Assembly (NCBI RefSeq): GCF_963921235.1
Contig: NC_086100.1
Span: 21,328,001-21,392,000, forward strand
From: Mobula hypostoma
Taxonomy: Eukaryota
Reading direction: 5' to 3'
DNA length: 64,000 bases
The notes under the pieces were generated by a model that was not told the origin of the DNA, made no database searches, and was given only the letters and a program-made list of their open reading frames with translations. The position numbers were made by a program, and so were the translations under genes. Shown here piece after piece: positions 23,946 to 26,536 of the stretch. Position 1 is the stretch's first letter, and each line of letters opens with the position of its first letter.

Positions 23946-24777
23946 ACACCAGCACCATCCCCCATGAGTAGCACTCCTTCTCTGCCACCTGTACCACACT
24001 CCATCCTCACCATTCCCAACATGCTTTTCTCCCGCCAGATTTACAAACTCGCTCTGCACTCCACAATTAACAAATACAGTACTGTGCAAAAGTCTTAGGC
24101 ACCCCAGCTATAGCTGTATATATATGTGACTAAAACTTCTGCGCAGTACCATAATTCCATCAGCTAGTCCCACTTGTCTGTTTTTAGGCTATATTCCTCG
24201 CAACCATTCTTATCCATGTATCTGTCCCATAGCCTTTTAATTGCTTTTCATGGATCTCCCTTAGCCATTTTCTCTGGTAGCTCCTTCCATATTTCTGACC
24301 ACCCTCTGGGTAAGAAAGTTATCCCCTCTCCCCCTAAATCTATGTCCTTAGAATCAGTATTGGTGACACCCGACATAGATTGGGAGACCGCTTCACTGGG
24401 AATCTACACTCCATTATTCAGAACAAGCAGGATCTCCCAGTGGCCACCCATTTTAATTCCTATTCCCATTCCGATATGTCCATCCATGGCCTCTTCCACT
24501 GTCACGATAAGGCCACACTTAAGTTGGAGGAACAACACCTTAGATTCCTTTTAGGTAGCTGATAACCCGATGGCGTGAACATTGATTTCTCAAACTTCCA
24601 GTAATGTCTCCCCACCCTTCACCATTTCCCATTCCCTTTTCCCTCTCTCATGTTAACTCCTTGCCCACACATCACCACCCTCTGGTGCTCCTTCCCCCCA
24701 CCCCACCCCTTTTTCTTTCTTCCATGGCCTTCTGTCTCTTTCACCAATCATTTCCTAGCTCTTTGCTTCATCCCTCC

Positions 24778-25765
24778 TGTGGTAAATCATGTATATATGT
24801 TGTAACTCGGTTACCTGTCTGGACACACACCTCTGCTGACTGTCCCTGTGGCTCCTCCCACAGAGTCCTGTATAAAGGTGTTCGCCTTGCCCCTCCCCCT
24901 CAGTCCAGGGGCAGACACTCACTGTGGAGGTCGTATTGTACAGCGAATAAAAGCCTTTCAGTATTTTACCAAACCTCAGTCTTTTGGAGTAATTGAAGGT
25001 GCTTCAATTTTATTCACTGTACGTTTTAAAACATGGAACAGGCCTTGAGACCAGAAAAATTAGACCTCAATCCGCAAACACCTGAAGCTGGAAACGCTTT
25101 CGAACGCTGGCTGGCCTGTTTCAAAGCGTATCTAGAGGAGATTAAAGCGACCAACCCCATAGCGAAGCACAGAGTTCTACTCTCCAGGGTCAGTCCACGG
25201 GTCTATTCACTGATCAGAGACCAGCCAAACTACGACGGCGCAATGAACGCACTCAAAAGATAATACCTGCGGCCGATAAACAGCATCTATGCTCGGCACC
25301 GTTTAGCGACACGACACTCCCATACCGGGCGCAACGCACACGCACGAGGGGTTACCGACGCCTAACGTGCTGGCACCTGAAGTCAGGCCGGAGCCAGCAC
25401 AACCGCCATCGCCGGTGCTACGTAGATCACAGCGACGGACTCGACCGCCTGATAGACTTAACCTGTAAATATACTTCTTGTAAATATTGTCAGTCACTTC
25501 ACCCCGCGGGACTCTTTTTAAAAAAGGAGGGGTGAATGTGGTAAACCATGTATGTATGTTGTAACTCGGTTACCTGTCTGGACACAACCCTCTGCTGACT
25601 GCCCCTGTGGCTCCTCCCACAGTTTCCTGTATAAAGGTGTTCGCCTTGCCCCTCCCCCTCAGTCCGGGGGCAGACACTCACTGTGGAGGTCGTATTGTAC
25701 AGCGAATAAAAGCCTTTCAGTATTTTACCAAACCTCAGTCTTTTGGAGTAATTGAAGGTGCTTCA
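24778..25765 (+). mobile_element. Internally deleted Gypsy LTR retrotransposon, 988 bp
   Basis: Two 229-bp LTRs (24778-25006, 25537-25765) with TG..CA ends and about 8 differences; TSD CCTCC (24773-24777, 25766-25770); polypurine tract AAAAAAGGAGGGG before the 3' LTR; TATAAA and AATAAA in each LTR. Confidence 0.95.
25033..25468 (+). pseudogene. Gypsy gag N-terminus joined to the extreme pol C-terminus
   Basis: MEQALRPEKLD..FERWLACF..LKR*YLRPINSIYARHRLATR, then a frame change near 25310-25316 to ..PVLRRSQRRTRPPDRLNL*, a typical Gypsy integrase tail. Confidence 0.8.
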
Positions 25766-25949
25766 CCTCCCCCTCAAAGTTTCACCTATCCTCTGGTGTT
25801 TCTCTCTCCCTTCCCTCCATGTTTCAAATCTACTCCTCAGCTCTTTTTTTACTCCAGTCCTGCCAAAGGGTTTCAGCTTTGACTGAAACGTTGATTTTCC
25901 ATAGATGCTGCCTGGCCTGCTGAGTTCCTCCAGCATTTTGTGTGCGTTG

Positions 25950-26057
25950 ATCAGAATCAGAATCAGGTTTAATATCACCAGAACATGTCATGAAATTTGT
26001 TGTTATGCAACAGTAGTACAACGCAATAGATAATAACAAAAATATGAATTATGGTAA

Positions 26058-26113
<56 letters not shown>

Positions 26114-26536
26114 ACATATATATTAAAAAGTTAAATTAAATCAGAGGTGCAAAGAGAGAAGAACAAAGTAGTGAGGTAGTATTCATGGGTTCCTTGTCCA
26201 TTCCGAAATCTGATGGCGGAGGGGAAGGAGCTGTTCCTGAATTACCGAGTGTGTGCCTTCAGGCTCCTGTACTTCCTCCTTGATGGTATCAATGAGAAGA
26301 GGGTATGCTCTGGGTGATGGGGGTCCTTAATGATGGATTCTGTCTGTTTGAGGCATTGCTCCTTGAAGATTTCCGAGATGCCTGAGTGCCCATGATGGAG
26401 CTGAAGGATTTTACAATTTTCTGTGGCTTATCTTGATCCTGTGCAGTGCCACCACCCCCCCACCCACCATACCAGTCGGTGACACAGACAGTTGGAATGC
26501 TCTCCGCGGTACATCGGTTGAAATTTGCAATCGTCT
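25950..26536 (-). mobile_element. Rex1/Babar-like LINE 3' fragment
   Basis: Homologous to 10820-11350; (ATCAGA)n tail. Confidence 0.75.
26058..26121. repeat. (TG)n(TA)n microsatellite
   Basis: Directly visible; more than 20 TA units. Confidence 0.97.

Follow-up and report, generated by a model that had tools for sequence, protein, structure and literature searches.

Structure of the element

The 64,000-nucleotide (nt) stretch of Mobula hypostoma contig NC_086100.1 analysed here (positions 21,328,001 to 21,392,000 of the forward strand; hereafter the window) contains a retrotransposon with long terminal repeats (LTRs) at 24778–25765 on the + strand, in which the 15 nt beginning one base past the 5′ LTR are almost fully complementary to a segment of that same LTR. 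Judging from comparative sequence data, these 15 nt (25008–25022) are, with a probability of roughly 0.75, the primer binding site (PBS) of a Ty3/gypsy retrotransposon that is independent of transfer RNA (tRNA) and primes itself. The element is an internally deleted copy of 988 bp, with only 530 bp between its LTRs of 229 nt each, which are identical at 221 of 229 positions. Its features are as follows.

24773–24777, +: CCTCC, left copy of the target-site duplication (TSD), identical to the 5 bases after the 3′ LTR
24778–25006, +: 5′ LTR, 229 nt, TG..CA, direct repeat of 25537–25765, ending ..CTTCA at 25006
24871–24876, +: TATAAA, candidate TATA box, read directly, 67 nt before the LTR arm
24938–24952, +: LTR arm GTACAGCGAATAAAA, proposed self-primer, recognized by its complementarity to 25008–25022, with the hexamer AATAAA at 24946–24951
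24953–25006, +: rest of R and U5, with a predicted U5-IR-like hairpin (GCCUUUCAGUAUU.. / ..AGUAAUUGAAGGUGC) that stacks on the duplex of primer and PBS
25007, +: spacer base A between LTR end and PBS; CA plus 1 nt is the spacing in all relatives, mostly with A
25008–25022, +: putative self-complementary PBS TTTTATTCACTGTAC, beginning one base past the LTR
25033–25309, +: N-terminal remnant of gag; open reading frame (ORF) of 76 amino acids (aa) at 25033–25263, then in-frame gag to the deletion point
25310–25468, +: remnant of the C-terminal tail of pol, last 52 codons, ..PSPVLRRSQRRTRPPDRLNL plus stop, from its translation and its match to protein P0126
25520–25536, +: polypurine tract AAAAAAGGAGGGGTGAA, read directly, abutting the 3′ LTR
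25537–25765, +: 3′ LTR, direct repeat of the 5′ LTR
25766–25770, +: CCTCC, right copy of the 5-bp duplication

The ends of the element were confirmed by empty sites: joints from 24772 to 25766 in contigs of paralogous host-repeat copies skip 993 bases, that is, the 988 of the element and 5 of the TSD. The host sequence (24700–24777 and 25766–25850 of the window) is itself another very high-copy repeat, and its paralogous copies show the empty site with many variant flanks. The motif GGGG(T/A)GAA also precedes the LTR in relatives. The internal deletion is joined at about 25309–25313, a position marked by loose contig ends at 25309 and 25313 in several runs. The stop at 25261–25263 in the gag ORF is private to this copy, as 25261 is C instead of T in nearly all other copies. 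The observed/expected CpG ratio is 1.12 in the internal part of the element against 0.26 in the window, which points to a fairly recent insertion. More than 12,000 contigs from one DNA run map onto the element; the family is thus very abundant, and the element at this site is a dead, internally deleted member of that ray family. The earlier note on this DNA had described a Gypsy element, and the Ty3/gypsy origin stands, but the copy is not complete, retaining only the start of gag and the tail of pol. Outside the element, the (TA)n microsatellite at 26052–26121 gave spurious weak matches to microRNA families (mir-297 and others), all under the gathering scores.

Complementarity at the PBS position

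The sequence TTTTATTCACTGTAC (25008–25022) is the reverse complement of GTACAGCGAATAAAA (24938–24952) at 14 of 15 positions. This complementarity to an AATAAA-bearing segment, as well as the TATAAA upstream of it, had been reported in the earlier note, and both were verified directly in sequence and coordinates. When about 20,000 random 30-mers from the window were compared with the LTR, none reached 14/15 and the best had 13; a pattern search yielded 3 matches with 0.06 expected. The whole window was further scanned on both strands for a signature consisting of CA, 1 nt, and an arm, 12 nt or longer, with its complement 15–95 nt upstream, and the sole match was the site at 25008–25022.

Family variation was read from the assembled contigs of four runs, two of DNA and two possibly of RNA, which together represent two organisms. 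At 25016, the mismatched position, G accounts for approximately 95–100% of the contig depth in the four runs, and the A found there is private to the window copy; the mismatch is a private CpG decay that followed insertion. The family majority pairs at 15/15 positions, and the A that replaces G as the majority base at 25023 in three of the four runs lengthens the duplex to 16 bp. A loose end at 24921 in run X10 (second organism) belongs to a divergent LTR subfamily, which reads ..GGAGGTCACATTTTACTGCTAAT.. before the hexamer and has a different arm sequence.

The arm occupies the exact position of a PBS, 1 nt after U5. No TGG-type PBS was found between 25007 and the gag ATG at 25033, where the sole TGG is that of the start codon (ATGG) and the bases after ATGG differ among relatives; the earlier statement that a tRNA-type PBS is missing was thus correct. 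No tRNA genes were detected in the window by ARAGORN, and a search of 24000–26500 against Rfam returned nothing relevant.

The same layout in related elements

Relatives of the gag piece were identified in manta-type assemblies (87% identity), stingrays, catsharks and hound sharks, and farther off among metagenome proteins and in a Trichinella polyprotein. The gag-selected sample comprised the DNA of six loci (L001, L002, L003, L005, L006 and L007). The arm begins one base past ..CA in five of them, with the following pairs.

L002: LTR arm TCAATGCTAATAAAA, PBS arm TTTTATTAGCATTGA, 15/15 (17 with one mismatch)
L001: LTR arm TTTCTGTTCAATAAA, PBS arm TTTATTAAACAGAAA, 14/15
L005: LTR arm TTTTACAAGATTAAA, PBS arm TTTAATCTTGTAAAA, 15/15
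L003: LTR arm TGTTGATTAAA, PBS arm TTTAATCAACA, 11/11
L007 (Trichinella): LTR arm CTTTTAACTGAATAAA, PBS arm TTTATTCAATTAAAAG, 15/16

The sixth locus, L006, includes no more of this region than the end of the LTR and a PBS that begins with TTTTATT. In L007, the arm is present only after the 5′ LTR, and unrelated sequence stands behind two other LTR copies.

A second, independent sample was chosen by reverse transcriptase (RT), with an alignment of pol (A4) that led to 80 metagenome loci; a broad gag alignment (A2) was nowhere conserved enough to be used, and a metagenome scan with alignment A3 gave no matches. The signature stood right before the gag ATG in 33 of the 49 RT-selected loci that had a gag-like match and at least 140 nt upstream. 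The other 16 were mostly spurious matches inside pol, or had a PBS-like TTTATTTTGCTAAA with a sub-threshold partner. A strand control over 488 kb, restricted to LTR arms ending TAAA(A), detected 23 loci on the sense strand and 1 on the antisense strand, and this single antisense signature came from a copy of this kind in inverted orientation, whose 19-bp duplex is perfect.

The samples provided 33 distinct arm pairs (the window and 32 other families) from rays, Trichinella and many metagenome contigs. Their common layout is an LTR ending ..CA, one base, and then an arm of 11–20 nt complementary to a segment of the LTR. The LTR arm usually ends in AATAAA or ATTAAA, and most of the remaining arms end in the close variants GTTAAA, TTTAAA and CATAAA. 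In many families the gag ATG lies 0–3 nt past the arm, which leaves no room for another PBS.

Some contigs needed separate treatment. L003, L004 and the metagenome contigs L008, L009, L019, L022 and L023 show the order pol end, LTR, PBS, gag, or have identical ends of 123–184 nt; such contigs are assemblies in which multi-copy elements have collapsed or look circular, and they misled the detection of LTR pairs. The LTR pairs that blastn reported at the contig ends of the five metagenome contigs were assembly overlaps and not LTRs, and a gag-anchored search was used instead.

Covariation and the adjoining hairpin

Outside the hexamer (positions 7–14), pairing in the 33 arm pairs was 95.6%, whereas PBS arms permuted among families (2000 permutations) paired at 58% on average and never above 68%. 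The PBS also tracks the variant of the hexamer: AATAAA is matched by TTTATT and ATTAAA by TTTAAT. A double change distinguishes L015 (..GTTTATTAAA / TTTAATAAAC..) from L016 (..GTTGATTAAA / TTTAATCAAC..), and further ones separate the close relatives L010 and L018 as well as L008 and L010. Between the window and L002, five arm positions differ and all five are compensated. Compensatory changes between the two arms, a check suggested in the earlier note, were present in every relative with a readable 5′ LTR junction, and none of these relatives had a normal tRNA PBS or had lost the complementarity.

These comparative data have already refuted the explanation of the inverted repeat as a chance match or an assembly artefact. 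Only the A/T-rich composition of half the arm speaks for it; against it stand the statistics of the random 30-mers, the permutations and the signature scan, together with the recurrence of the repeat in independent assemblies and in four runs.

A host RNA as the partner of the PBS, for instance a fragment of a tRNA or some other small RNA with ..UAAA at its end, is very improbable; on this reading the resemblance of the PBS to the LTR would be secondary. Such a primer would fit the loose consensus ..AGTTGA[A/T]TAAA among the invertebrate families, and priming by half-tRNAs is known in copia elements (PMC6317226). However, tRNA 3′ ends are CCA, not UAAA, Rfam gave no match around the element, and the arms differ widely, always changing with their own LTR (window, L001, L002, L005, L011, L013, L028 and L059). 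As the partner varies with the element's own LTR, a common host primer is ruled out.

The LTR arm is directly followed by RCC in 25 of the 33 families, and a small predicted hairpin, typically RCCU..AGGY, begins at most 2 nt from it in 26. The counterpart in the window is a longer predicted stem (GCCUUUCAG.. / ..UGAAGGUGC), and the predicted fold of 24902–25045 has an energy of −38.6 kcal/mol (z = −2.4). In L040 (1278–1359), the LTR arm ATTAAGTTTTGAAGA has ATTAAG at its 5′ end and no hexamer at its 3′ end; a GCCT..AGGT hairpin still follows.

Protein classification

The gag piece of the window was 87% identical to P0001 and 57–67% identical to ray proteins. P0126 of Hypanus sabinus (1082 aa) has the same gag N-terminus, followed by RT, RNase H and integrase and by a tail that matches the pol remnant of the window; the identity between the window tail and the C-terminus of P0126 was 50% (E 3e-13). 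With the order protease (PR), RT, RNase H (RH), integrase (IN) as the mark of Ty3/gypsy, the part RT-RH-IN was read in P0067, P0126, P0129 and L003. The best relative of solved structure was the Ty3 Gag-Pol 7q5b (E 1.8e-56), and the LTR ends TG..CA and the 5-bp TSD also agree with Ty3/gypsy.

A chromodomain (PF00385, E ≤ 0.1) was detected neither in P0125, P0126 and P0129, which have more than 200 aa beyond the integrase core, nor in the pol of L003, nor in the Pfam lists of 120 RT relatives. The latter span rays, sharks, Trichinella, corals, an anemone, a crab, insects, a sea cucumber and a mussel. Where they are named, RT relatives are labelled 17.6/gypsy-like and never Tf2-like, such labels being weak evidence on RT grouping. 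The 76-aa gag piece had sub-threshold Pfam matches only, including DUF7083 (E 0.26, below the cut-off), and DUF7083 is strong in the distant gag relative P0109. Retrotrans_gag/DUF4939 had no match in the window gag piece or in the full-length family gag P0001; one distant relative, P0045, had a weak match to Retrotrans_gag. An Atlas feature search with the gag piece returned only retroelement-gag-like clusters. Placed by domains and labels and not by a tree, the lineage is Ty3/gypsy without a chromodomain, as read from these sequences, and not a Tf1/sushi chromovirus. This agrees with the earlier impression that the gag is not sushi-like: its N-terminus is DUF7083-like.

Among described groups, the Mag C (SURL-containing) Gypsy elements of animals have LTRs with a mean of 174 nt, a conserved AATAAA and the termini TGTNATRT...AYANAACA, and their hosts range across animals including vertebrates (Benachenhou et al. 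2013, PMC3601003). Many relatives of the window element resemble them in short LTRs with TGTAATGA.. starts and ..ACAACA ends, a comparison made by LTR features and not by an RT tree. The window LTR, in contrast, fits poorly, starting TGTGGTAA and ending GCTTCA. The Mag C study deals with LTRs only and does not mention PBS complementarity (PMC3601003).

Two database entries of this lineage are of separate interest. P0133, a Gypsy pol of the same lineage, is filed as a 'DDE-type integrase' under a metagenome-assembled genome of Rhizobiales and is probably animal DNA in a bacterial bin. P0031 and its cluster are catshark gene models that bear the name 'nuclear envelope integral membrane protein 1a-like'; their first part is this gag N-terminus, and they are probably chimeric.

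Proposed mechanism of self-priming

From the complementarity, its position, the covariation, the adjoining predicted hairpin and the protein classification, all of which are established, we infer cleavage, priming and regeneration of the PBS as follows. In the genomic RNA, the 15–16 nt after the 5′ LTR would pair with the R segment ending AAUAAA(A), and the U5 hairpin would stack on the primer duplex. A freed 3′-OH would then prime minus-strand strong-stop DNA through U5. Plus-strand strong-stop synthesis would copy the primer back, so that each cycle would write the PBS anew from the LTR arm. Given the established retroviral mechanism, such rewriting would keep the two arms complementary and would lead to near-perfect covariation.

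Several points weigh against self-priming. The covariation could in principle reflect selection on a regulatory hairpin alone. A tRNA fragment as primer also retains a small probability, the tRNA comparison for the window consisting of the ARAGORN scan. The runs are assembled contigs, in which RNA starts are unreadable, and cleavage and complementary DNA (cDNA) priming are deduced from sequence. If transcription began at 24902, approximately 30 nt after TATAAA, the primer would have a 5′ extension of 36 nt, which would be unlike Tf1 and awkward for plus-strand transfer. Finally, in the L008/L010/L018 family the arm ends AGTTAAA and a separate AATAAA-like motif lies in the loop between the arms; with GTTAAA at its end and AATAAA in the loop, the arm need not be the poly(A) signal in every family.

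Start of the transcript

The sharp 5′ edge of the complementarity suggests the position of the primer 5′ end, perhaps also that of the transcript start, at about 24937, instead of a start some 30 nt past TATAAA. At somewhat less than even odds, self-priming would be exactly of the Tf1 type, with the transcript starting at the 5′ edge of the LTR arm (~24937–24938) and its capped first 15–16 nt serving as the primer. As the PBS would be recopied from the whole primer in each cycle, a sharp, family-specific edge at 11–20 nt should mark the primer end, and the Tf1 primer is the first 11 nt of its transcript (PMC7175516). No TATA-like motif was found at a conserved distance in relatives. In a sizeable share of the family copies AATAAA replaces TATAAA at 24871 (loose-end consensus ..CCCCTGAATAAAGG), so the family is polymorphic for the supposed TATA box. 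Moreover, very short LTRs (138–165 nt) leave just 84–113 nt upstream of the arm. Against a start at the arm edge, the window and L001 have a TATA-like box 58–67 nt before the arm, which is too far for vertebrate TATA-directed initiation there. An initiator-like TCAGTC shared by the window and L002 was considered as evidence for a start at 24902 and was dropped, as the alignment showed no positional homology.

The 5′ poly(A) signal

Retroviruses control the use of their 5′ poly(A) site through RNA structure. In the HIV-1 poly(A) hairpin and in foamy viruses, the AAUAAA in R is placed in a stem, and the occluding partner of foamy viruses is present only in the 5′ context. The predicted leader of the present element is similar: the AAUAAA in R lies inside the predicted duplex, at the 3′ end of the arm in most families, and its partner exists only in the 5′ context, as in foamy virus. 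The copy of the arm in the 3′ LTR (25697–25711) has no complementary partner downstream, where the TSD and the host repeat follow after 25765. Since the duplex is possible only downstream of the 5′ LTR, it may also cover the 5′ poly(A) signal and leave the 3′ copy accessible; this deduction is the weaker one, and we put it forward tentatively. In an RNA starting at the arm edge, the 5′ AAUAAA would lie about 9–15 nt from the cap and cap proximity alone could silence it, making masking by the duplex redundant. In retroviruses, by contrast, the partner is not the PBS and priming is by tRNA, whereas here one duplex would serve both purposes.

A purely regulatory or packaging role of the duplex as a hairpin, in poly(A) masking, dimerisation or encapsidation, with another primer used for reverse transcription, appears quite improbable. 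The sequestration of the hexamer in a predicted stem solely in the 5′ context and the retroviral precedents would suit such a role. Nevertheless, the arm lies exactly where a PBS is expected, no alternative PBS exists between the LTR and gag, whose ATG directly follows the arm in many families, and one family with a canonical AATAAA outside the arm still keeps the duplex.

Comparison with known self-priming elements

Almost all cases of self-priming have so far come from the Tf1/sushi chromoviruses and from a small number of lineages in fungi and plants. The sequences compared here suggest that animals harbour an old and large Gypsy lineage, outside the chromoviruses, in which self-priming is the norm, and an animal-wide Gypsy lineage probably primes its own reverse transcription. 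We consider it rather unlikely, as a whole, that such a non-chromoviral lineage, from cnidarians and nematodes to sharks and rays, has abandoned tRNA priming and uses one duplex to supply the primer, hide the 5′ poly(A) signal and rewrite the PBS. The literature searched contained no account of self-priming for Gypsy elements of animals that are Mag-like or non-chromoviral, or of a PBS or primer overlapping a poly(A) signal; older literature was incompletely covered and an earlier description is possible.

A survey of animal Gypsy elements sought tRNA-type PBSs only and left 361 of 1512 elements without one (PMC13524379). If self-priming is true of the present lineage, annotation based on tRNA PBSs would score its elements as lacking a PBS. 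The lineage should then also be insensitive to defences aimed at a tRNA-type PBS, e.g., 3′-tRNA fragments, and escape from PBS-directed silencing could contribute to its being so abundant in ray genomes. Together, the primer on the poly(A) hexamer and the conserved hairpin form a compact RNA module of approximately 70–120 nt, which allows direct tests of how an LTR element tells two identical poly(A) signals apart and of how RNase H makes a primer from the element's own RNA.

Self-primers have been predicted in Tcn1, Maggy, Skippy, Cft-1, Boty, Grasshopper and Afut1 and in the plant Ty1/copia TAR lineage (Houba, Osr-1) (PMC6317226, PMC6934838). As here, they were inferred from complementarity between LTR and PBS, but these are elements of fungi or plants, chromoviral or copia, and an overlap of primer and poly(A) signal was not reported for them (PMC6317226, PMC6934838). 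Sushi-ichi and the vertebrate Tf1/sushi elements, as they are cited in PMC6317226 and PMC4600332, are likewise vertebrate Gypsy elements with predicted self-primers. They differ in being chromoviruses with a gag of the Retrotrans_gag/DUF4939 type, whereas the ray family has a DUF7083-like gag, no chromodomain and 17.6/gypsy-like RT relatives.

The closest functional parallel is with Tf1 and Tf2 of Schizosaccharomyces pombe and Tj1 of S. japonicus, which also have no tRNA PBS and in which the sequence after the LTR pairs with upstream RNA of the element itself (PMC7175516, PMC4600332). The Tf1 PBS pairs with the 11 nt at the very start of the RNA, and RNase H cleaves just past them, between nt 11 and 12 (PMC7175516). 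According to work cited in PMC4600332 and PMC7175516, a stem-loop beside the primer/PBS duplex is needed for Tf1 priming; the predicted hairpin of the ray lineage adjoins its duplex in the same manner, and an RNase H cut would likewise be expected at the duplex end. Tf1 is a fungal chromovirus, whereas the ray lineage is an animal one without a chromodomain. Furthermore, the Tf1 primer consists of the first 11 nt of the transcript, while the putative primer arm of the ray lineage measures 11–20 nt and ends in a poly(A) hexamer.

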